Positions 3,578-39,452 of a stretch of DNA of 41,713 nucleotides are shown here, piece by piece; the stretch's first letter is position 1, and each line of letters begins with the position of its first letter. The DNA comes from Caecitellus pseudoparvulus (taxonomy: Eukaryota > Protista > Bigyra: Bicosoecida). The stretch lies in contig CBFFRQ010000213.1 in assembly GCA_965644315.1 (NCBI GenBank), positions 1 through 41,713 on the forward strand, given 5' to 3'. The notes beneath the pieces are model-generated. The model was given only the letters and a program-made list of their open reading frames with translations. It was not told where the DNA came from and did no database searches. A program made the position numbers and the translations under genes.

Positions 3578-5482
3578 ATGGGTCAGAAAATTAATCCGAG
3601 AGGTTTACGTATAGGTACAGTTTTAAAATGAAGAAACAATTGATATTCAGAATCATCAAATTATTTATCTAATTTTTATAAAAATTTAAACATTAAAAAC
3701 CTTATAAAAACATTTTTATTATTAAAATCTGAAAAAAGTTTACTTGTTGATTTTTTTATTTATGATATAAATGGTTATAAATCTTTATTATTAATAAGTT
3801 TTTATAATTTGGAACATAAAAAAAATTCAAAAAAAAAACGAACTGAAAATTTTTTAACTAAATATAAAAAAACATTGAATATTAATAATAATAATACTCA
3901 ATTATTAAAAAAAAAAATTAAATTATTAAAATTGAATAAAAAACCTATTAATAAAATTTTTGTTAAAAGTTTTGAAAAATATAAACTTTTATTAAATTTA
4001 AATAATAAAGTTGATAATACTTTGAATAATTTTTATTTAAAAAAATTTAATAAAATTTATTTAGAATTAAAAAATAAAAAAACTTTAAAATTTTATAAAG
4101 GATTAAATACAATTTTAAATATGCAAAATAATGCTTTTAATTATAATTTTAATCAAAAATTATTAAAATTAAAAAATTTTAATAATTTATCTATAATTTC
4201 AAATAATAAATTAATTAAAAATATTATAAATAAAAATATTATAAAAACAAATGTAAAATTTTTATATGCTTTTATTTTTAAAATTTATTACCAAATTTTT
4301 AAATTTACTTTAAAATTTAAATTAAAAAAATATTTAAAAACACTTACTAATCTTAATGATTTTAAATTATTATCAACTTTAATTTTAACTTATACTTTTT
4401 TAAAATTAAAAAAATTAAATTTTTACAATTTTAAAAATAATATAAATTTGAATATAAATTTTAAAAAACATAAATTTTTATTAATATTAATAAAAAAACT
4501 TACATTTAATTTTAATCAAATAAATAAATTTAAATTAAATAATTTAATTAAATTAAGAAAAATTAAAGAAAATCATTTGATAAATTTAACTACAAATGAA
4601 TTAAATCTAGATAATAATAATTATAAAGATTTGATAATATATTCAAAAAAAAAAAATTTAATAAATTTTTTAAAGTTTTCAAAACTATTTTTAAAAGATA
4701 AACAAAATTTTAATAATTTACAACTTAATAGTATTTTTATTAATAACTATTTAAAATCTAATTTAATAACAAAATCATCAATTAAGAATAAAAATTTAAA
4801 TAGATTAAATTTAAATACTTTTAAATACACTAATTTATATAATTTTAAAAGAGTTTTAAATATTTTAACTAAATTAAACTATAAAGTTTTTTTATATAAT
4901 ATTAAAAGTTTATTTAATTTTAGTAAATTAAATATTTCAACTAATGAATCATTAATAATTCAAAAACAAAAAATTAATCGATATTTTGAAATTTCAAATA
5001 AATTAAAAAAACGATTTAATCGTAGATGAAATAGAATTAATTTTTTAGGTACTGATTTAATGAATATAGCGCAATATAGTTTATTTTTTAAAAATCCTAC
5101 TCTTTTAGCTTATTTTATTTCATATCAATTTACTTTTTTACCAAAAAATAAACGTCAAACTAGTTTTGCAAAATATATTTCAAAAATTTTATTTAATTTC
5201 AAAGGAGAATTTTCAGATATTAAAGGATTAAAATTACAATTTAAAGGTCGTTTTAACAAATGAAGTCGTACTAAAAAATGAGTAGCTCAAGCTGGTAATA
5301 TTTTATTACAATCTTATAATACTTGTGTTGATTATAGTTGTTCAAAAGGTCTTGTAAAAAAGGGTATTTTTAGTACTCGTATTTGAATTCAATATGATTT
5401 AAAAAGTAAATATATTTTAAAAAAAAATATTTTAAAATATTTTCAATATTCTTACATTAAACATAAATTTTTAAAAAATTAA
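3578..5482 (+). CDS. rps3: ribosomal protein S3 with large internal K/N/L-rich insertion (634 aa)
   Basis: N-terminal MGQKINPRGLRIG; C-terminal IKGLKLQFKGRF..RT...KKGIFSTRIWI; continuous frame under code 4. Confidence 0.93.
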
Positions 5483-6048: not shown

Positions 6049-7311
6049 ATGCTTTTTTTTATAAATTGACTTTTAATAATTTTAGGTGTGCTATTAGGAG
6101 TAGCATTATTTACTTTACTAGAACGTCAAATTTTAGCTGCGCTTCAACGTCGACAAGGGCCTAATATTGTAGGTTTTTTTGGTATTTTACAACCAATTAC
6201 TGATGGGGTTAAATTAATTTTAAAAGAAACTGTAATTCCTCGTAGTTCAGATACTTTTATTTTTATTTTTGCACCTATATTTACTTTTGCTTTAGCTTTA
6301 TGTTTATGAGTAACAGTACCTTTTACATCAAATTGACATATGATTGATTTTGATTACGGTATTTTATATTTATTTACCGTTTCATCTCTTAGTGTACATT
6401 CAGTAATAATGGCAGGTTGATCAAGTAATTCAAAATATGCCTTTTTAGGTTCATTACGTTCTGCAGCTCAAATGATATCTTATGAAGTATCATTTGGTAT
6501 TATAATTGTTAATATAATTATTTTAGCAAGATCTTTGAATTTAATTAATATTGTTGAACAACAAATAAATCTATGAAATGCTATACCATTATTTCCAATG
6601 TTTATAGTATTTTTTATTTGTGCTTTAGCTGAAACAAATAGACATCCCTTTGATTTACCTGAAGCAGAATCAGAATTAGTTTCTGGATATAATGTTGAAT
6701 ACGCTGCTGTAGGTTTTGCATTGTTTTTTTTAGCAGAATATAGTAATATGATTGTAATGTCTATGTTAACTGTTCTTTTATTTTTAGGTGGTTGATATTT
6801 TATTTCAATTGAATATATTTTTCATATTTTTTTTAATTCTACTTTTTTAGTAAATTTTATTCAAGCTATTATTTTAGTAGGTAAAACAATGATTTTTATA
6901 TATCTTTTCGTTTTAGTAAGAGGTACTTTACCTCGTTATCGTTATGATCAGCTGATGAGATTAGGATGAAAAATTTTTTTACCTTTAACTTTAGCTTATG
7001 TTATATTTACAGCATCAACTTTATATACTTTTGATCAAATTAATTTTTATAATTATATTGTAAATCTTGATTATTTAACAATAAAAAATATAAATAGTAT
7101 TAATAATCATAATATTTTTTTTACTAATTTTTTTCAAAATTCATTTTTTGATTATAAAACAGAAACTACAAATTGATTTGAACAATTATTCAAAGTTACT
7201 AAAGATTCTTATTTTTTAGAAAAAGATTTTTATATAAATAAATATGGAAGACCTTTTGGAGTACCTACTTTTGGAATATATGGTCAATTAGTAAGTGTAC
7301 GTTTAGGTTAA
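6049..7311 (+). CDS. nad1: NADH dehydrogenase subunit 1 with ~90 aa C-terminal extension (420 aa)
   Basis: [26 protein letters not shown] and PRYRYDQLM motifs; frame open to TAA at 7309-7311. Confidence 0.96.
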
Positions 7312-7335: not shown

Positions 7336-8148
7336 ATGTTTAAAAAAATACATTTTTATTATCATAAACTTTTGGAATATGAATTAAAAATTATTAATAT
7401 AATCCGATGTTATTTTATAAATTTGTATGAAACATATAAACGTAGAAAAATTATTTTATTTTTACGTCAGAAATATCTAAAAATAAAAAAAATATATGTT
7501 AAATATAAATTAATTAAATATTTATTAGATTTTGTTTTTTGATTATTAATACTTATACTGTTACTCTGACAATTTGAATGAGTACGTTATGCAGGTTTTT
7601 ATTTTTTAGTTTTTTTAGTATGATTACCTCAACAAATTTTACGTTTTATTTATTATTTTATAATTACTTTTTTTTTTTATCAAATTATTTTTAAATGAAT
7701 TTTATTTACGATAAAATTAATAATTATATTATTATTTACAGAACCTTTATTTTATTCATTTTTATTAGGTATTATTATCGGAATTTTTTTTTATGAGTTA
7801 GAATATTTTAGATGACATCGTGTAATTTTTAATTATATGCGTTTATGAGTATCAGGAACTAATTATTTTTTAGAAGATGCTATACGTATAAATAGATTAT
7901 TTTGGGAAGATTCTAAAAAATGACAGAATGAATGATATAATTCTAGTCAAATATTATGACAATATAAAAATTTAAATGAAAAATTAAAAATTAAATATTT
8001 AAAAATTCATAAAGAATTACAAAATATTATATTTATAAATTTACGTTTAAAACAAACTATATCTCAATTAATGAAAAAAAATAATAAATTAAATACTTAT
8101 ATAAAAATTTTAGAAAAAGAAAATAAATATTTACGAAAAAAATCTTAA
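7336..8148 (+). CDS. unidentified ORF270: basic N-terminus, 3-4 hydrophobic segments, charged helical C-terminus
   Basis: ATG to TAA, 813 nt open under code 4, filling the gap between nad1 and rps10; several TGA-Trp codons. Confidence 0.75.
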
Positions 8149-11000: not shown

Positions 11001-11068
11001 TAGTAAAGGTAGGAATCGAACCTACACATGACGGATCATGAGTCCATATGAAACCCTGTAACTTTACT
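11001..11068 (-). tRNA. trnM: tRNA-Met (CAU), probable initiator, with degenerate/shortened D-arm
   Basis: Acceptor AGTAAAG/CTTTACT, anticodon arm ATGGA-CTCATGA-TCCGT and T arm GTAGG-TTCGATT-CCTAC; only 14 nt lie between the acceptor and anticodon stems. Confidence 0.75.
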
Positions 11069-12194: not shown

Positions 12195-13514
12195 TTAATT
12201 TTTACGTATTAAAGGAAATGTTTCATTATAACGAGTTTTTAATAAACTTAATAATAACATAGTATATGAATTATTACAAAATGAATCAGTTAAATAATAA
12301 TTTTTAATACTATTATTATAATTAAAAAAATAAAAACGAGAAGATGTTTTAGCTTTATTTATAAATCATCAAAAATTAAAAAATTTCTTATTAATATTTT
12401 TATCAAAATAATTATTTAATAAAGTAGAATCAAATAAATTTTCAAAATTTAAGGTTTTATTGAATTGTTTTGAAATTCAATTTTTATTTAAATTTTTTTT
12501 ATTTTTATAAATATATAAATTGTTAATACTATTAAATAAATTATTATTTAAAAAATTTAATAAAAATTTTTCAGTAGCTAAATTTGATAAATTTTTTTTA
12601 ATGTTTGATTGTTTATATATTATTTTAGGACTTTTTAATAATACTCCAGAAAAATTATAAATTAAAGAATTTTTTTCATAATTATTAATAATATTAATAT
12701 ATTTTTTTTTATTTAAAATATTTAATTTTTTTGAGGTATTAGTTTTTTTTGTATTAAAATAATTAAAAATAAAAGAATTAGTAATTTTTAAATTATTTAT
12801 AGGTTCTATAGTATTATTTTGTAAATAAATAACATCTTGTTTTAAATTTATTTTATTAATTAAACCATAATTATTTAAATTATTACTAGTTTGAAATAAA
12901 TTAAATTCGTTATTTATTAATGAAGTTAAATTTGCTGATAATAATAAAAAAGCATTTTTTGAATTATTAAAATTATATAATTTTAAATTTAAAAATTGAT
13001 TTTGAAAGGTAGCATTATTTTTATATTTATTATTTATCATATTTGCTCCAAAAATAGTTAAATTTTTTTTATTTTTAAAAAAAGTTTTTAAAAATTTTGC
13101 TTTTCCTTGAAAAATATTAACCATATATTTATTAGATGAACTTAAAGTTTTATTACGAAAAGTAAGATTATTAAATGAATTTATACTGTATATATTTACA
13201 GGTGATTCATTTGCCATATTACGTAAATTTAAATGAATACTACTATTTTCATAACGAGGATTAGTACCAATCATTAAAATATTATCAAAAAACTTAATTT
13301 CATTAGTTACAAAATTAGAACGATAAAAACATGGTAAATCATTATAAAAAAATTCACCATCATTTTCATATAAAAAACTTAAATTATTTTTATTAGTATT
13401 TGAAAAATAATTATATATTGATAATAGATTAGTTAAATCATTATTTCAACCTAAATTTATTAATTGATTTTGTTGGCATTCTGTTTGAAGTTGTTTATAT
13501 AAATGTTTTTTCAT
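12195..13514 (-). CDS. nad11b: NADH dehydrogenase subunit 11, C-terminal (molybdopterin-fold) part, divergent (439 aa)
   Basis: IGTNPRYE....LNLR, YEK...YNFSG and C-terminal NYYLTDSFCNNSYTM, matching the Nad11/NuoG C-terminus. Confidence 0.85.
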
Positions 13515-18142: not shown

Positions 18143-18640
18143 TTATTTTTTAAATTTTAATCCACCTAAAATTTTAAATTGGTTTTTAGTATTATTAATA
18201 AATAACATTATTAAATTGATTAATTGTATATCTAATTTTAATAAATTGATTTTTTGTCATTTATAAAATTTTTGATTAATAAAAAAACCTACTATTATTA
18301 AATTTTTTAAATTTTTTATAATAAGTTTTAATTGATTTTGATTTTTATTATTTTTAATTTTTTCATATAATAATATAATATTCCCTTCAAAAATATTAAT
18401 AAAATGATTGTTTGATTTAAATACATTACGTATTAATTTATTTGAAGGTGAATAACTCGAAATATTAAAATCTTTTAATATTTTATTAATTTTTAATCTT
18501 TGATTAGAATCAAAAAATTCAAAAATTACTATAAAATTTAAATTTGAGTTAATAAGAATATTTTTTAAAATAATTTGTTCATTTATTAATTTATTTTTTT
18601 TTATAAATTGTTTTAATTGAATAACGTTTTGTGATGACAT
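18143..18640 (-). CDS. rpl10: probable ribosomal protein L10 (165 aa)
   Basis: Pattern ..SNKLIRNVF....F.NIFEGNIILLY....LIIVGFFINQKFY parallels the L10 KN.L / F.G...L / GG...G layout; size is appropriate. Confidence 0.6.
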
Positions 18641-18744: not shown

Positions 18745-18784
18745 ATAAATTAAATAAAATTTTGGATAATTTAGTAAATATCAA

Positions 18785-18885
18785 ATAAAATAATAATTTC
18801 TATATTAATAATAATATATTAATTATATAAATAAAAAAAAAGAGTTCGGAATGTTCTCTTTATTATATAATAAATGTTTTCTCGC
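18785..18885 (-). rRNA. rrn5: candidate divergent AT-rich 5S rRNA (ends uncertain)
   Basis: Minus strand AAAGAG-AACATTCCGAA-CTCTTT gives helix III plus the 5S loop C motif (CAUUCCGAAC); flanked by complementary ATTATATAA/TTATATAAT (helix II) and followed by a TATATT/AATATA-GAA hairpin. Confidence 0.6.
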
Positions 18886-18911
18886 ATTAATTTAAATACA
18901 ACGCAATAAAC

Positions 18912-19010: not shown

Positions 19011-22000
19011 CTATTTTTTTGAATTATATCAATTTCAAATTAAATAAGATATATATAAACAAATTAATGTTATTGAAGCATCTTTTAATCATCGATAAGT
19101 TTCATTAGGAAAAGTAATTTCGTCTCAATATTGTCTAAAAATTAAATAACGACCATAAGTTCAGTAACCAAAATCATTTTTAGGTAAATCTGAATGTCAA
19201 TGATCTTCATTATTACCTTCAAAATTTATTAAATCTACTGATAATTGTTGTATATCTAAAATTTTAGAAGTTAAAAAAGCTTCTTGAAAAATTACTAATA
19301 AATTTTGATTTACAAAAAAAATAAAAAAAATTAAAATAAAAATAAATAATGATGCAAAAAATAAAACATTTGGTTTTACAAAATTTGTAAAAAAATCAAA
19401 ACTTATATTATCAAATTGAATTATTTTTATTAAACGTAAATAATAAAATAAACTTAAAATAGTAAATAATAATACTAAAAAAACTAAAGCATTACGTTCA
19501 GTTGATTCTAATCCTATTAAAATATTTAATTTAATAAAAAAACCAGCAAAAGGTGGAATTCCTGCCATAGAAAAAATTACTAAAGAAAATATAAATTGAA
19601 TAGGTCATGATTTATTTAAAATTGAATTTAAATTTGTTAAAAATTTTGTATCATTTCTTATATAAGATATAAAAAATCAAATTATTAATGAACTTAAATT
19701 ATAAACAAAAAGATATAAAAAAATATATCCATATGCTTGTAAATTTGGAAAAAAAGAAAATGCTAAAAATAAAAAACCTACATCTATCATTGAACTATAA
19801 ACAAAAAATTTTTTAATAAATTTTTCATTAATTGCACTAAATGAACCTATAATTATTGATAATAAACCTAAAATTAAAAAAATATAAATTCAAGTTTCAC
19901 GTAAAAATCCTAAATAAACATCAAATAAATTAATAGCAAATAAAAATAATACTAATTTAGTAAAAATACTTAAAAAAATTACTGAACTTAAAGTACCTTC
20001 ATTATATATAGTAGGAGCTCAAATATGAAAAGGCGCTGCAGTAACTTTAAATGAAAAATTTATTATTAAAAAAACTAAAATTAATATTATTGAAATTATA
20101 AAATAACTTAAAAAGGTAAAATTTGATTCATTAAAAAATAAATCAGAATTATTAAATAAATTTTGATATAAAGGATTATTTGTTAAAAAATTATTAAAAT
20201 TAAAATTTGTTAAAAACGATTCTTTGTTTTTATCAAAAATACTAGTTGATAAAAAAAATAAAGGAAAAATAGCATATTTAATATTTGTATTATTTTTAAT
20301 TTCTGGTATTAAATTATTAAATGTTTCAAAAATATTTCCATTTAAAGGTGATACAATAAAAGTTTGATTTTTAAAAAATTCTTCTAATAGAATAGATTCT
20401 CCGTAATTTATATAATTTAACATAATAGTTGGATTGTAATCATATAATAAATTTTCATTATAATTTAATAAAGTTTCAGTAATTAAAATTTTTTCAATAT
20501 TTATATGATCGTGATTTGATAAACTATTATTATTGAAAATAAACTCATTATTTAAAATATTTGTACTTTTTTTTAACCCTAAATTTATATAATAACTTTC
20601 TTCAATAAATTTAAATTCATTTAATCATAAATTTTTATTTAATAATCAATTTAACTCAGTAGAAGTATTATTATTTAAAAATGCATAAACATTATTAAAA
20701 ATAAATGACGAAACTCAATTTGAAATTTCTACTGATTTTTCAGAAATATTTTTAATTTCAAAAGAATTTATAAATTTATCAAAAATATTATTAACATAAA
20801 TTTCATGTATATTATGTAAATAAGGTTTTATATTTCATAATTTGTTAATTTGTAATTCACTTAAAAAAATATTATTATTATTAAAAAAGTTATCATCAAA
20901 ATTAATAAAAATATTATTTAGTTTTAAAAAATTATTATTTTGAGTAAAAAATAAATTTTCAAAATTAATATTATTTAATAAAGTAAAATTTATTGTTAAT
21001 GATTCTTTTAATAAATTTTGTAAATGTTTAGATGATAAGGTTTCGATTTTAAATAAATTTAAATTTTTTTGATTTAATAAACTTCATAAATTTAATAATT
21101 CGTTTGAATAAAATGATTCAATATCTGTATATATTAAATGAGAATTAAATAAATAAGTTTTATAATCATCTAAAGTTAACTTAGTTTCATTTAATTGAAT
21201 TAATGATTTAATATTTAATAAACGTTCTATTTCTAAATTATGAAAATTTTCATTAAACTTAAAAAAATCAGTACTTAATAAATTAATATTAGTATTTATA
21301 TTATATATAAAATCATTTGTTAAAATTTTATTATAAATTAATTTCTTTAATATATTATTAGACTCAAATTCAATTAATAAAAAATTATTAATAAATTTGT
21401 TATTAGTTGTTTTAAAAAAAGAAATTTCATTTAAATATGTTGAACAATCTAAATTTGAATCAATATTATATAATAACTCAGTAAAATTATTAAAAAAAAC
21501 TAAATCACCGTAACCTAAACTTAAAAAACCGTTTACTAATTGATCAGTGATTAAATTATTTATTTCTTTTTCATTTAAGTTTAATGAATTTTGTAAATAA
21601 TTTTTATATTCATTGGATATTATAAAATCTTCTAAATTTAAATTTTTTAAACTATAATCACTCATTAAATTTAATAATTCTAATTGTTTAGTTATTATAA
21701 AATGATCAATGATTACTTGTTCTTTTAAATTAATAAAATTATTAAAACTTAAAAAAACTTCTTTAAAATTATAATTAATTTCAAATAAATATTTTAAATT
21801 TATAAAAACATCATTTAAAATAGTAAAAAATGAATCTATTAATGAAAAATAAAATATATTTGTAATAAAAATATTATCAAATGATTTATTATTTAAAATA
21901 TTAATTCATTCAGAATTATTATAAATATTATAAGTTAACATATTTTGATTTGAATTAGTATTTAAAATTTCAAAAAAATCTATATATTTAATATTTAAAT

Positions 22001-23096
22001 TACTTTGAAATAAATTATAAATCATATCTACATCAAAACTAGTAAAATCTTTATACATAAAAATTAAACCTAAAATTAAAAAAACTGATGGAATAGCACT
22101 TATAACTAAATAACGAACACCAGAAATTGCACTTAATTTTCTATAACGTTCAAGACTTATTAAAATATATGAACAAAAACTTATACATTCTAAACAAATA
22201 AAAATTTGAATAAAAGTTTTACTAAAAAATAAAAATATACTTGATAATAAAAATAATCATAATAATCAGCTAAATTCAAAATTTTTATTTTCATTAATAA
22301 AAAATTTATCAATAAAACCTAAAAATAAAAAACTTATAAAAAATAATAAGATTAAAATTAAAATTATAGTAAATGAATTAAAAGTAATTTCATTAAAAAT
22401 ATAATCAATACCTACATTATTTGATGAACCTAAATTAAATAATAAAAAAAATTTTTCAAAATCTTCATTAAAAAAAGATATTAAATTATTTAATTCACTT
22501 AACATAAAATAAATATGATTTATATATCAAAAAGCATTTGTAGTATTATATTGATTTAAAAAAAATAAAGTATTACTATAAAAATCTTGAAATTTATCAA
22601 ATTTTAATGAAATTGAATTATCTTCAACTAAATGTAAAATTTCAATTTTATTATTTAATAAATTAAAATTTTGAGTTTCACTTATAATATCTTTATAATT
22701 TGTATTAGTATCTAATACATTTTGTATAGTATAATAATTAGTATATTCTATACTATTAAAAAAATAAAGATTAAAAATTATAAAAATTCAAGTAATTATA
22801 AAACAAAACGAAATAAAATGTAAAAAATTATTACGTATACTTGAAATTTCAATTGATAATGAAAAAATTATTATAAAAGTAAATAATAATAAAGGCATTA
22901 AAACAAAAAACAATACATTATTTTCAATTGAATTTAAAATATTTTCTTGAAAAAAAATATTAGTTATTTTATCAATTTCATATTTATATTCTCCAAATAA
23001 ATCTAAATGTTCTTTAGTTTTTATTGTAGGATTATCGTAAATGTTATTTAAAAAATTATTATTATTAAATGTAAAACAATTTAATAAAGTAAACAT
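19011..23096 (-). CDS. nad2: NADH dehydrogenase subunit 2, giant (1361 aa) with large in-frame insertions and terminal extensions
   Basis: Five track ORFs share one frame and I found no TAA/TAG in the gaps between them. Motifs: CLECISFCSYIL, SGVRYLVISA, FKVTAAPFHIWAP, SMAGIPPFAGFFIK, YYLRLIK. TAG stop at 19011-19013. Confidence 0.92.
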
Positions 23097-24045: not shown

Positions 24046-24249
24046 TTATTTAAAAATTTTAATATTTTGAATTAAATTAGTTTCATAATTTAAAATATTT
24101 TTTACAGTTTTAAAATAATTGATAAGAAAAAAACGTGCGTTTAATTTTAAAAAGTTTTCACTTATAGATTCATTTGCAAAAGTTTGTAAGAAAATTAAAA
24201 AAGTACAAAAAAAATATTCAATAAAAATTTCTTTATCCATTTGAGGCAT
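24046..24249 (-). CDS. atp8: ATP synthase subunit 8 (67 aa)
   Basis: N-terminal MPQMD followed by a hydrophobic segment and a basic tail. Confidence 0.85.
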   Translation of the reverse strand: MPQMDKEIFIEYFFCTFLIFLQTFANESISENFLKLNARFFLINYFKTVKNILNYETNLIQNIKIFK

Positions 24250-24314: not shown

Positions 24315-25229
24315 TTAACCTATACGTTTTTTAGCAAAATAATTAAACATAATAGCAAAATATTCATCATCAATTAAATGACTTTTATCACCAAAAATAC
24401 TTAAAGCAACAACACTTATAGGCATGAATCCATGATTTACACCACAAATCTCACTACATTGTCCATAAAAGTTACCTGGGCGTTTAATAAAAGTACTAGT
24501 TTGATTTAAACGTCCTGGACATGCATCTAATTTAATACCTAAAGCTGGTACAGCTCAACTATGTATAACATCAGCAGAAGTTATTAATAAACGTACTTTA
24601 GTTTTAACAGGTAAATATAAACTATTATCAACTCTTAATAAACGTTCATGTTTATATTGTACTGCATCATCTGGTAACATATAACTATCATAACTAAAAA
24701 TTTTTTCAGCTCCGTCTAAAGCTTCTTTAACAGTATTTGAAAAATCTTTATTATCAGCAGAACTTAAATTATCTAAACCTACTGAATTTCAAAAAGAACT
24801 TCCTTCATCAAAAGCTTTATATAAATCTCCATAACCTTTTAATAAATATAGAGGATCTACCATTTCATATGATCAATATCATTGATGACCTATAACTTTA
24901 AAACTAAAAGAAGATTGGATTACTTCATCAATAGAATATAATAATGAAAATGATGGAATTGCTATAGCAATTAAAATTAAAGCAGGAATTATTGTTCAAA
25001 TAATTTCTAAAACAGGTGCATGAGTTACTACAATAGGTTCTTTAACAGTTTCACTATTAAATAACATAATACAACGAGATAACATATATATAACAAATAT
25101 ACATATAACTACTAAAAAGAAAAATAAATCATGGTGAAAATTAACTATACCTTCCATTACTGGAGTAGCTGCTATTTGAAAACCAAATTGTCAATTAGTT
25201 CCTGATTCTAAAATATTTAATAAAAACAT
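24315..25229 (-). CDS. cox2: cytochrome c oxidase subunit 2 (304 aa) with ~45-50 aa insertion
   Basis: GHQWYWSYE, DVIHSWAVP and CuA motif [16 protein letters not shown]. Confidence 0.98.
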
Positions 25230-25338: not shown

Positions 25339-26832
<1,494 letters not shown>

Positions 26833-26927: not shown

Positions 26928-27791
26928 TTAATTTCATGTATAATCATAAAAATAACGACTTTTATCTGAAATAAAATTTAAAGAGTTTTTTACATCATAA
27001 GTTGGTGTTATTTTTATAATACTTTTAGCTTCTTTTTTATTTTTTTTATTAACAAAATTATTTGAAATATTTTTGTGTCTAATATGAGCTTCAACAAAAG
27101 TACCTGAAGTATTAGTAAAATCAATTATTTTTGTTTTTTTTAATTCTCAGTGACGAGATCTATATTTATGTATATTAGAAGTTAATGCACCTACTGGACA
27201 TAAATCTACTAAATTACCTGAATATTCACTATTAACAAATTTATTTAAATAAGTACCTATTTCCATAGATCCTCCACGTCCTAAAGCTTTTAAAGTTTCA
27301 AAATTACCAAATTTTTCCATAAAACGTACACAGCGTGTACAATGAATACATCTAGTCATAGTAGTTTTAACAATAAAACCTAAGTTTTTATCTTCTACTT
27401 TACGTTTATTAATTTTAAAATTTCTATTTCTATCTGATCCAAAATCTTTTGTATAATCTTGTAAGTCACAAATACCTCCTTGATCACAAATAGGACAATC
27501 TAAAGGATGATTTACTAATAAAAATTCTAAATTATTTTCACGTGCTTTTTGTACTAAAGGGCTATTTAAAAAAATTGATGCTTTATTTACTAAAGGTGTT
27601 GAACACGATACTAAAGGTTTTGGAGCTTTATACACTTCAACAAAACACATTCTACAATTTCCTGCTATATTTAAAAATTCATGATAACAAAATCTTGGTA
27701 AATTATAATTAAAAAAGTCTACTACTTGAATAATAACACTTAAACTATTTTTTCATAAATTATATTGAATATTATTTAATCAAATAATCAT
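26928..27791 (-). CDS. nad11a: NADH dehydrogenase subunit 11, N-terminal Fe-S part (287 aa)
   Basis: PRFCYH...AGNCRMC, HPLDCPICDQGG.CDLQD, RCIHCTRCVRF and DLCPVGALT; ends after SDKSRYFYD. Confidence 0.96.
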
Positions 27792-33682: not shown

Positions 33683-35911
33683 TTAAAATCCTAAATCTTT
33701 ATAATAATTTAGAATATTTTTTATTGATAAATTAAATGAATAATTTATATCATTATAAGTAGGATCTTTTATAACTCCACCACGTAAAGTTTTTAAATCT
33801 AATTCAATATAAGATGGTATAAATCAATATTCATTAAAAGGTCTTTCAAATTTATTTTTTTTTAAAAAACGTCAACGTGTTTTATTCAATAGTTTTTTTT
33901 TAATTTTTTTTAATCTATTTAATGAATGACGTTGTCTGGTTTTATTTTTTAATAATTTTTTATTTAATTTAAATCAAATAAAAAAACGTTTTTTATAAAA
34001 ATAATTTGACATTAATAAATTTTCAGAATATTTTTTAGTTAAATTTTTAAAAAAGACAAAAAATTTTTTATTTTCTTTTAATGAATATTTTATATCTTTA
34101 TATAAACTTTTATTCAAATTTTGATAATTTTCAATTAATTTTAAAATATATAAACGTTTATTTAAATTATTTGAAATTTTAAATTTTGTTAAAAAAATAT
34201 TATTTATTTTTTGTGAATTTAAATTTAACAAATTACTAAAAAACTTAATATAAAAATTATTTATTAAAATTTTTAAATTAAAAATAAAAATTTTAAAAAA
34301 TAAATTTAAAAAAATTATTTTTTTTTTAATTTCAAAAATATTATTTATATTTTTATTATGAGTTAATATAAAATCATCTTTAAAATTTGAAATTTTATTA
34401 GATTTTTTATAATTTAAATTAGTAAATATATTAAAAATAAAATTATTTGAATAAAGATTAGAAATTTTATAATTATTAATTTGCTTATTTTTAATAATTT
34501 TATCAAAAAATAATGAATAAAGACTTAAAATAGTTTTTTGTTTTAATGTATTATTCACTTTAGTTAAATTAATATTTTTTATCATAAATTTTTTTATAAT
34601 AGATTTAAATATAATTAATTTTTTTGAAGTTTTTTTATCTTCTAAAATATTAAATTTAATTTGTTTATATTTAATATATAAAAATAATCATAAAAAATTT
34701 AAATTTTTATTATTTAATAATTTAACTAATTTATAAAAATAATTCAATTTATTTTGTATTTTAACTAATCTATTTAATAATTTTATTTTAATCAATTTTT
34801 CTTTAATATTTTGATATTTAATAAAAATAAAATTATCAAATTTTAAATTTAAATTTATTTTATTTATTTTAGTTAAACGTTGATCTGATATTTTTTTAAA
34901 ATAAGAATTTTTTTCTTGTTTATTATTAAGAAATTTTTTTAATATTTTAGGTACATGTTTATTATTTGATTTTTTCTTATTAAAAAATTTTTCACTTTTT
35001 TTTATATTTTTGTAATTATAAAAATTTACAAAATAACGTTGAGTTTTGTATAACTTTTTAATATTTAATTTTGATTTTAATAAATCTAATTGTTTATTTT
35101 TATTAAATTTATAAATATTTACTTTTTTTTTCAATAAAAAAGAATTATTTGAATCTAAAATATATTTATTTTGATTTAAAACATTAATTAATTTTGCTTC
35201 TTTTTTATAATTTAAATTAGTTAAAAGTGTTAATTTTTTTTTATTTAAAAAACGACGTTTATTTAAATAAGATAATAAATAATATTTTTTATACATTTTT
35301 TTTTTTCTATTAAATAAAGAAATTAATCGACTTAAACGTTTATAAATCTTATATTCAAAAATATATAAAAAAAAAAATCAATATTTTTTAGGTACTGAAA
35401 TAATATCTCCTACTTTAACAACTAAACTTGTATTATCAGTTTTATTACCATTTATAAAAACACCATTAGTTTTTATAAAAAAATGGCTTGCAAAAATAGT
35501 AGGAAAAAATTTCATTCTAAATAAAACAGTACTTATACGAAATTCAAAAGCTTTTAAAAAACTATTTAATTTGTTTAAACGAGATTTTTTATAATTTAAA
35601 AATAAAATACGTTTAAAATTTGTAAAATCATTTTTACCATAAAATAATAAAAAACTTTTACGTTGAATTATAGCATTATTAAATTTAAAATTTTTATTAC
35701 TTTTTTTTCATTTTTTTTGAGAACGTAAAAAACGACGTTTTGAAATTCATTTTAAATTTTTTAATTTTAAATATTGTCTATGTCAATAACCTTTTCTAAG
35801 ATACTTACGTCCTCGAATGTCATTGAATTTTCATAATCTAGAATTTTTGTAAGGATTTATTTTAGAATTTAATTTTAAAACTAATTTTAATCTTGGTTTG
35901 TAAAAATTCAT
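33683..35911 (-). CDS. rps4: ribosomal protein S4 with large K/N-rich insertion (742 aa)
   Basis: S4 domain FEFRISTVLFR..F.PTIFAS......V.ING.....S..VKVGDIIS and C-terminal PSYIELDLKTL; continuous frame under code 4. Confidence 0.92.
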
Positions 35912-35916
35912 TTTTA

Positions 35917-35989
35917 TGGAGATAATCGGAATCGAACCGATGACCAAATATATGCAAAACATTCATTCTACCAATTGAACTATATCCCC
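35917..35989 (-). tRNA. trnA: tRNA-Ala (UGC)
   Basis: Cloverleaf, anticodon TGC, G3:U70 identity pair. Confidence 0.95.
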
Positions 35990-36326: not shown

Positions 36327-37013
36327 TTATTTAAAAGTTTTTTGTTTCTTTAAAAAACTATTTAATATTTTTATATGTTTTATATCTAACTTAATAAAAT
36401 TTTGTTTAAATAATAGAAATTTAATATATAAAATTTTAACTGATTGATAAAAAATTGATATATAATTATTTATAAAAAATATAATCAAAAATAAACTTAA
36501 AAAAAAATATATTAGAATTACATTATTAAATATAAATAATAAAAGATAACTTATCATAAATCAAAATAAAGTTATTTTTCATTTAAAATCAATATATAAA
36601 AAACTATATATACTTATATTAATTAGTATTAAAACCAAAAAAATTTTTAAAAATTGTGAATACAAATTAATTTGGTCAAAAATATTAATTTTAATTATAT
36701 CAAAATTTATAAATTCAAATAAAAAAAATTCATTTCTATTATATAAAAAATAAAATTTTGTTAAAAAAAATAATCAAAAACAAATTAAAACAAAATTAAA
36801 AAAAAGAATTAAACGTAATTGAATTAATTCATATCAATATAAAAAATTTTTTAAAAATACTAATAATATTCAATACAAAAAAAAACTTATTAAAAATATA
36901 AGTATAACAAAATTTTTATAATATAAATATTTCAAAATATATAAAAATTGTAAATTTATTAAAAAAAATAATAAATTAAAAAAAAATAAAAGACAAAATA
37001 ATACAATAAACAT
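36327..37013 (-). CDS. multi-pass membrane ORF228, possibly a highly divergent TatC (MttB)
   Basis: Open 687 nt with about 5 hydrophobic segments; FLKNFLYWYE recalls the TatC F..P.L...E motif and IKINIFDQINLY recalls the TM3-4 loop. Confidence 0.45.
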
Positions 37014-38348: not shown

Positions 38349-39452
38349 TTAATGACCTACAAAAATATCACTTAAATATAAATAAGTTAAAATTACAAAT
38401 ATATAAGTTTGAATAAATGCAATTGCAGTTTCTAATACAGTAAATATAAATAAAACTACAAAAGGTATATAATGCATTAAAACATAAATATCACCTAATA
38501 ATAAACTACTTCATCCAAAACCTGCTACAACTTTCATTAAAGTATGTCCAGCCATAATATTAGCAAATAGACGAGTAGCTATACTTACAACTCTAAAAAT
38601 ATATGAAATAATTTCAATAGGATTTAAAATTAATACTAAAATTAATGGACAACCTGCTGGATAAAATAAACTAAAAAAATATAAAACACCTTTTTCAGTA
38701 ATTATAGTTAAAATAATATTTATAAATACAGCTAATGCAATATAAAAAGTATTTACAAAACTACTAGTAATAGTAGTTGAATAAGGTACCATACCTTGTA
38801 CATTTGAAATTAAAATAAATAATAATAACCCGTGAGTTTTTATAAAAAATTCTTGATATTTTTTAACATCATGATTATTTTTTAAATCTAAAACACTAGC
38901 AAATAAATTTAAATTAGCTTTATACATATATTCATCTAAAATTTCAATTAAAGTACGAGGTATTAATAAAGTATCAGTAAAATTTCAATTTGATAACATT
39001 CAAACAAATAAAAATAATGAAATAAAACTTACACTTTCTTTAATAAAAAAAATATTGATAAAACCGCTTTGATATGAAACTGCGTTTAAATCAAAACTAC
39101 CATCTAAAGTTTTAAAGATTTCATAATAATAAAAACTTTGAATACCAAAAATATGAAAAATTAATTGAGTTAATACTACAAAAGCAAAAACTACTACAAA
39201 ACTATAAAAATTTTCATTAGTTTTTTCATTATTTAAGATATAAAAATAAACAGTTAAAATTAAAGCAAGTAATAAATATGAAATAAAAAATTGACCTTGA
39301 GATCAAAAATGAGGTATAAAAAATGAATTAGTATCATTTAAAGTATCAAAAAAACTTCCTCCTAAATTAAAATTTTCATTAGGAAGAGAAACAGTAGCTA
39401 TATTATAGTCATAAGCAAAACTTTTAAAACCTTCTAATGGATTAAATAACAT
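38349..39452 (-). CDS. atp6: ATP synthase subunit 6 (a) with ~110 aa N-proximal insertion (367 aa)
   Basis: N-terminal NPLEGF (cf. SPLEQF), RLFANIMAGH and LETAIAFIQTYIF motifs. Confidence 0.95.

Follow-up and report, generated by a model that had tools for sequence, protein, structure and literature searches.

An enlarged mitochondrial Nad2 with a long acidic loop between helices 6 and 7 in a bicosoecid flagellate

The nad2 gene and constraint on its insert

The window, a 41,713-nucleotide stretch that is the whole of contig C213 in a 30.6-Mb assembly of Caecitellus pseudoparvulus, contains a mitochondrial nad2 gene (19011-23096, minus strand) whose predicted product, a core subunit of respiratory complex I, is 1361 amino acids (aa) long. 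The question raised by this locus is whether the roughly 630 hydrophilic residues in the middle of the chain are translated and retained, are removed from the RNA or the protein, or are an error of assembly. As described in the initial annotation, which was made from the sequence alone, the gene is one continuous frame of 4086 nt under genetic code 4; it lies on the minus strand, runs from an ATG at 23096 to a TAG ending at 19011, contains 20 TGA (Trp) codons and no TGG, and is abutted upstream by trnV. Protein searches were made with TGA-free pieces of Nad2 rather than the whole chain. Matches to PF00361 were found on both sides of the insert (E 1.3e-9 for the part spanning transmembrane helices (TM) 3 to 6), two pieces scoring above the Pfam cut-off and a third 20.8 against a cut-off of 21.5, and the nearest solved chains for the core are ND2 and NuoN, which places the protein in the Nad2/NuoN family. 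No stramenopile complex I structure was among the solved matches found in structure and sequence searches. Identified by motif, Glu303 (TM5), Lys1017 (TM7), Lys1047 (TM8) and Lys1189 (TM12) are kept, and we take these to be the counterparts of the E. coli NuoN pump residues. At about 1360 aa, the protein is the longest Nad2 among those compared (341-571 aa in solved ND2/NuoN chains).

From the glycine of the TM6 motif (aa 326) to the APT that follows FKVTAAPFHIW (aa 1027) there are 701 aa, compared with 74 in Arabidopsis Nad2 (7ar7_N); thus, about 627 residues are extra between TM6 and TM7. The insert occupies aa ~357-991 (20124-22028, minus strand), in close agreement with the approximately 630 codons at 20125-22020 first proposed. 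It has a net charge of -28 and a GC content of 12%, and is composed chiefly of Asn (20%), Leu (15%), Ile (11%) and Phe (11%), with 7% Glu and 6% Lys.

Given the base composition, an insert of this length would be free of stops with a probability of about 1e-27, and no open run exceeded 161 codons in 2000 shuffles. Four syntenic mitogenomes of diverged relatives, reached via rps12, encode Nad2 proteins called at 1312-1342 aa with an in-frame insert of 598-608 aa; their cores are 91-98% identical and their inserts 37-64%. Among the five lineages, synonymous sites are near saturation (proportion of synonymous differences, pS, 0.3-0.5), and the insert contains 29 gap intervals that keep the frame, versus none in the core. 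A maximum-likelihood codon model gave a ratio of nonsynonymous to synonymous rates (omega) of 0.146 for the insert (0.15 in round figures; twice the log-likelihood difference from omega=1, 357) and 0.017 for the core, with 0.12-0.21 in each third of the insert. The controls gave 0.41-3.4 in shifted and reverse frames and 0.82-1.05 with shuffled columns, the lowest value, 0.41, belonging to a frame of the reverse strand whose third codon positions presumably coincide with those of the gene. Conservation of the insert is highest at codon position 2 and lowest at position 3, and 106 of 644 columns are invariant and clustered in motifs. The insert had been described as poor in Lys, and AAA (Lys) relative to AAT (Asn) is indeed depleted in each of the five inserts when four-fold sites are taken as the reference (odds ratio 0.28-0.56, p 1e-5 to 0.04), compared with odds ratios of 0.8-2.7 in the matrix proteins Rps3, Rps4, Atp1, Nad7 and Nad11b. 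Thus, omega relative to its controls, the codon-position pattern, the depletion of Lys and the preservation of frame through gaps indicate that the insert is under protein-level constraint, loose overall and tight at aa ~458-520 and 898-927. The comparison with related mitogenomes proposed in the initial annotation therefore yields purifying selection, and upholds its argument that so long an open frame implies selection for translation.

Layout of the protein and its counterparts in other bicosoecids

Within the insert, the best-predicted helical segment (aa ~458-520, 21537-21725) has invariant residues Q460, D464, Q471, L472, N476, Y481, E489, F491 and Y497, and the most conserved motif (aa 898-927, 20316-20405) has 15 of 30 positions invariant in the five lineages; these and the following features are all on the minus strand. 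The conserved core comprises TM1-TM2 (aa 59-114, 22755-22922; assigned by hydropathy, 71-89% identical among relatives), TM3-TM6 with Glu303 at 22188-22190 (22029-22391; PF00361 and ND2/NuoN alignment, 91-98% identical) and TM7-TM14 with the three lysines (19293-20123; PF00361 and motif positions, 92-97% identical), of which the TM7 region matches Paracoccus NuoN, a match that is weak when taken alone. In addition to the main insert, about 250 extra residues are distributed over three extensions. The first is an acidic N-terminal extension (aa 1-58, 22923-23096), predicted from hydropathy, charges and NuoN topology to lie on the lumen side; the second is an acidic TM2-TM3 loop of about 120 aa (aa 115-235, 22392-22754; 14 Asp/Glu, 5 Lys/Arg), also predicted to be lumenal and 118-121 aa long in all five lineages, on which convergence of the codon model was unreliable. 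The third, a C-terminal extension of about 90 aa (19014-19292), combines a conserved Trp/Tyr-rich motif with a further hydrophobic helix that is followed by lysines at the terminus; with an omega of 0.12 it has been conserved among the five close lineages, and it is absent from the Nad2 of the more distant contigs L040, L049 and L052. It may represent an accessory-subunit-like element that became fused to Nad2.

The mitogenome is compact, apparently without introns, and 21% GC (64-69% in three nuclear samples), with rns, rnl and tRNAs that include trnW(TCA) but no trnT. By its Atp1 the host is a bicosoecid stramenopile, because the closest named proteins are those of Cafileria marina (81%) and Cafeteria roenbergensis (71%) and because the window and Cafileria are grouped in the Atp1 tree with support of 100/99. 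The host is not Cafileria itself: the mitochondrial DNA (mtDNA) of Cafileria likewise has no introns, but its rns and rnl are arranged in tandem and trnA and trnG are missing from it (PMC6723347). Nor is it Halocafeteria, in which nuclear GC is 46.8%. Across many marine samples and cultures (L002, L003, L005-L011), the mitogenome of the window varies little, at 99.7-100% identity, as of a cosmopolitan flagellate of low diversity; among close strains, four of five nad2 differences are nonsynonymous, three of them in the insert.

The corresponding loop is also expanded in other bicosoecids. In contigs with the Atp1 of C. roenbergensis (L034-L038, identified by the UniRef-named Q9TAH9), the predicted Nad2 measures 793-806 aa and is acidic immediately ahead of TM7. 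The TM6-TM7 loop has 323 extra residues in L040 and 371 in L049 (both Cafeteria-type) and 186 in L052, the last of which is inferred from gene order to belong with the bicosoecid Atp1 clade. Like the window, all of these have an acidic insert in the same loop and a code-4 mitogenome, but their inserts are shorter and cannot be aligned with that of the window, and these Nad2 proteins lack its C-terminal tail. Inserts of different lineages, aligned to each other and to the window insert, scored no better than shuffles, although the net charge of all eight inserts, from four lineage groups, is -4.4 to -8.0 per 100 aa. The L040 insert is partly of low complexity (Asp, Ser, Glu, Gly and Thr). The expansion is present in every Nad2 reached in the group, a set that excludes Cafileria, Halocafeteria, L031/L032, L039 and L044, and no published remark on the inserts of Cafeteria-type or L052 Nad2 was found. 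Thus, the bicosoecids present a series of +186, +323, +371 and about +600-627 aa in one loop, with unrelated sequence and equal charge density.

Fate of the insert

In NuoN, the N-terminus and the TM2-TM3 and TM6-TM7 loops are periplasmic, and all four extensions of the window Nad2 are accordingly predicted to face the crista lumen. We favour, with moderate confidence, the interpretation that the insert is translated and retained as a probably largely helical domain facing the crista lumen, that it grew within a permissive TM6-TM7 loop of an otherwise ordinary, functional proton-pump core, and that it is probably a scaffold. The mRNA would be translated straight through the insert in frame. 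Since the insert lies between helices 6 and 7 of a 14-helix subunit, the loop would have to cross into the crista lumen as the protein is inserted, a step presumably carried out by Oxa1, and the chain would have to re-enter the membrane; the domain would then stay on mature complex I and, with the other lumen-facing extensions of Nad2, would most likely act as a lineage-specific scaffold to which accessory subunits or adjacent complexes bind. Acidic extensions would suit the positive-inside rule and Oxa1-type export, and the TM5-TM6 loop, which is basic, and the lysines that end the chain beyond the extra helix appear to fit the matrix side. Retention of the loop would mean that the mitochondrial insertion machinery is able to export an internal loop of 630 residues in a 14-helix pump. 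The flagellate is widespread in marine samples, and Cafeteria, with its shorter insert, is culturable, so that the question is testable.

Growth in situ is suggested by the lack of a donor or homolog, by the faster divergence of the insert than of the core, and by the unrelated acidic inserts in the same loop elsewhere. Searches of insert pieces with phmmer against 1.84 billion representatives gave no match, but relatives were also missed, which indicates low sensitivity for sequence of such biased composition; a word-indexed search, which was limited by length, and a PDB sequence search also gave none, and the ESM Atlas returned only unnamed clusters at low recognition. No donor was found in the host's own genome or among the other mitochondrial open reading frames (ORFs) that were fetched. 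Faster divergence than the flanks and the absence of a detectable homolog, two characteristics of translated in-frame organellar insertions, are both found here. The initial annotation had suggested a novel domain grafted on complex I; selection for translation stands, but "grafted" goes too far for a segment with neither donor nor homolog.

Several other identities for the insert were rejected. The best match to histone-fold helices (VIA Z 6.3) is a generic helical one; an internal repeat hinted at by a MAFFT misalignment was no better than shuffles in hhalign; and DNA repeats in the region are AT noise. As for a replacement of lost nuclear-encoded subunits, NDUFB7 and NDUFB10 are still present and nuclear-encoded, and the Pfam models NDUFS5, NDUFC2, PF10785 and NDUFA13 gave no match, a blank that is uninformative.

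A bolder form of the favoured interpretation can be held only tentatively: a lumenal domain of an estimated 75 kDa, with a new fold, would replace or organise the lumen-side accessory subunits, link complex I to other complexes and shape the tubular cristae; the loop would be a hotspot for unrelated domains arising de novo from AT-rich DNA in each lineage; and an internal loop of 630 residues would be exportable.

Weighing against a retained, functional lumenal domain are the following observations. The cores of L040 and L049 are 71% identical but their inserts have no detectable similarity, and inserts that are unrelated between lineages argue against one conserved partner. Structure prediction, another of the checks proposed at the outset, was run with AlphaFold2 on two TGA-free insert pieces (five-row alignments) and gave mostly helical models at low confidence, with a mean pLDDT of 45 and 43, the exception being aa ~458-520 (pLDDT 70-85); Foldseek and Atlas fold searches with the insert models gave no standout match. 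We know of no direct demonstration of export for so long an internal loop. Simple Nei-Gojobori (NG86) ratios between the window and its relatives are about 1, and, although these were set aside as saturated and AT-biased, they make the value of omega for the insert model-dependent (0.03-0.22 across models).

Part of this evidence would also be expected if the loop were translated and retained without a specific partner, selection merely keeping it open, soluble, Lys-poor and exportable, in a process of constructive neutral growth. Length (186-627 extra aa) and sequence that are unrelated between lineages, the partly low-complexity insert of L040, the many insertions and deletions, the low pLDDT and the swelling of rps3, rps4, atp6, nad1 and atp1 in these genomes all speak for such a tolerated passenger. 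We nevertheless consider it unlikely, given that insert length varies by only about 5% inside the window clade, that invariant motifs contain Gly, Pro, Gln, Trp and Tyr, that omega is low in all three thirds, and that a burden of 1.9 kb is kept in a compact 41.7-kb genome.

Alternatively, the insert might be translated and then cut or nicked by a lumenal protease, giving a split Nad2a/Nad2b as in ciliates, in which case the loop would be a pro-segment or would chaperone assembly. In ciliates, a two-chain ND2 is functional (PMC10060162), cox2 inserts occur at sites where other lineages split cox2 (PMC5695614), and the lumenal face of plant Nad2 bears a transient assembly factor, GLDH (10.1101/2025.06.10.658862). 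Against this are the lack of a conserved cleavage motif at either junction and the retention of inserts in the precedents examined, which make cleavage distinctly improbable. A split of the gene itself, of the ciliate ND2a/ND2b type, would have a stop and a new start between the halves, and neither was found; nad2 is a single ORF in all eight sequences.

Removal at the RNA level, as a degenerate intron with an in-frame ORF or otherwise, is very improbable. RNA sequencing runs contain 13-37% of the words of the region, not localised, which could be exon-only; the contigs L028 and L030, which may be transcriptome contigs, extend 240 and 200 codons, respectively, past the 5' junction into the insert, but are not counted as evidence. 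The initial annotation had reported no GC-rich intron core and no LAGLIDADG, GIY-YIG or reverse transcriptase (RT) motif, and both statements withstood closer scrutiny: searched against Rfam, the window gave nothing at E<=10 and L015 gave chance matches only, the GC content of the insert is 12%, and Pfam searches with insert pieces of five lineages gave no match, including no endonuclease, RT or Hint domain. Neither the catalytic core nor the domain V of group I and group II introns was found, nor a LAGLIDADG, GIY-YIG or RT-maturase ORF terminated by a stop within the intron. Moreover, the insert is in frame with both flanks and stop-free in eight sequences, its conservation follows codon positions, and introns are absent from Cafileria mtDNA and not evident elsewhere in the window.

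An intein or a captured mobile-element or foreign gene is scarcely credible: the size and in-frame position would suit an intein with an endonuclease domain, but besides the lack of Hint and endonuclease matches there is no conserved Cys, TxxH or terminal His-Asn, as had been noted of the termini, inteins have not been reported from mtDNA (PMC9895450), and no homolog was found among the 1.84 billion representatives, in the word search, in the Atlas, in the host genome or among mitochondrial ORFs. Misassembly, which the initial annotation had named as a possible refutation, is excluded, since the same 1361-aa ORF is present in five other public assemblies (L002, L003, L005, L006 and L007, with 0-5 codons different) and at least 90% of nad2 words in 14 sequencing runs, and diverged relatives have orthologous inserts.

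Other observations and known systems

Other genes of these mitogenomes are also unusual. Growth of mitoribosomal proteins is extreme: Rps4 has 759 aa in the window (33683-35962), 840 in L039, 997 in L032 and 1641, with an acidic island, in Cafeteria (L034:3276-8201), and Rps3 has 634 aa in the window (3578-5482) and 871-896 in L039 and L044. Atp6 (38349-39452; L031:11801-13159) is extended at its N-terminus by about 110 aa that include additional hydrophobic helices, for a length of 367-452 aa in all bicosoecid-like lineages seen. Nad1 (6049-7311) is 420 aa long, about 90 of which form a C-terminal tail, versus 330-336 aa in L031 and Cafeteria; Cox2 (24315-25229, 304 aa) carries a short acidic insertion, of about 45 aa, beyond its helices; and Cox1 (25339-26832) is short, at 497 aa, without the usual C-terminal tail. 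The nad11 gene is split into a 287-aa N-terminal part (26928-27791) and a 439-aa ORF (12195-13514) with a weak Molybdopterin match (E 3e-4), and separate molybdopterin ORFs are present in L031 and L044 too. An unassigned basic ORF of 270 aa (7336-8148), with hydrophobic stretches and 11 Trp, has candidate counterparts of 247-252 aa in L031 and L044. Candidates for tatC (36327-37013, 228 aa), atp8 (24046-24249, 67 aa) and an rpl10-like gene (18143-18640, 165 aa) gave no Pfam matches; a Tat channel, if real, would bear on the export of large lumenal loops. Between trnD and trnS, an AT-rich spacer (18760-18910, minus strand) is strongly conserved in five lineages whereas its flanks are not; it has no Rfam match at gathering score and would fit a cryptic mitochondrial 5S rRNA. 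An extra tRNA of low score (11001-11068, 34.8 bits) was found with Rfam but not with ARAGORN.

In-frame insertions in organellar genes are already known as a class. The closest precedent is the nad2 of dinotom diatom endosymbionts (Durinskia baltica and Kryptoperidinium foliaceum), which has an in-frame insert of about 165 aa, unspliced by RT-PCR, that like the window insert lies between two conserved helices in a stramenopile mtDNA, has no homologs and diverges faster than its surroundings (about 40% identity, versus 88-93% in the flanks; PMC3423374). It begins at aa 213, which by position, unaligned, fits the TM6-TM7 loop (~aa 203-218 in the 499-aa Arabidopsis chain). The window insert is longer, at about 627 aa, is joined by three more extensions and has counterparts across bicosoecids.

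Inserts in cox2 are also very large, clade-wide and without homology, in a core subunit and after a membrane helix; in brown algae they reach about 1000 aa in frame (PMC5695614, PMC7194472), they occur in ciliates, and in Scrobicularia the enlarged protein is expressed (PMC9895450). Those inserts lie at a domain boundary of a Complex IV subunit, whereas that of the window is inside a 14-helix antiporter-like subunit. In Tetrahymena, cryo-electron microscopy showed that the COX2 insertion recruits a Tim hexamer and that core-subunit extensions make supercomplex contacts (PMC10060162). Tetrahymena COX2, COX3a/b and ND5a resemble the window Nad2 in being core subunits that are encoded in the mitochondrion and extended by hundreds of residues, in organisms with tubular cristae, and COX2 may by analogy serve as a functional model for the window insert. 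However, the Tetrahymena contacts are solved and its ND2 is split into two genes, whereas the window Nad2 is enlarged, and no link between the two in sequence or fold was found.

In the literature outside most subscription journals, no account was found of a Nad2 of this size, of proven selection on it, or of one loop repeatedly holding unrelated acidic inserts in different bicosoecids. The bicosoecid series is a natural experiment in how core respiratory subunits gain protein, whether functional or merely tolerated, and the Nad2 of the window is an extreme case of the class to which the dinotom, cox2 and Tetrahymena insertions belong.

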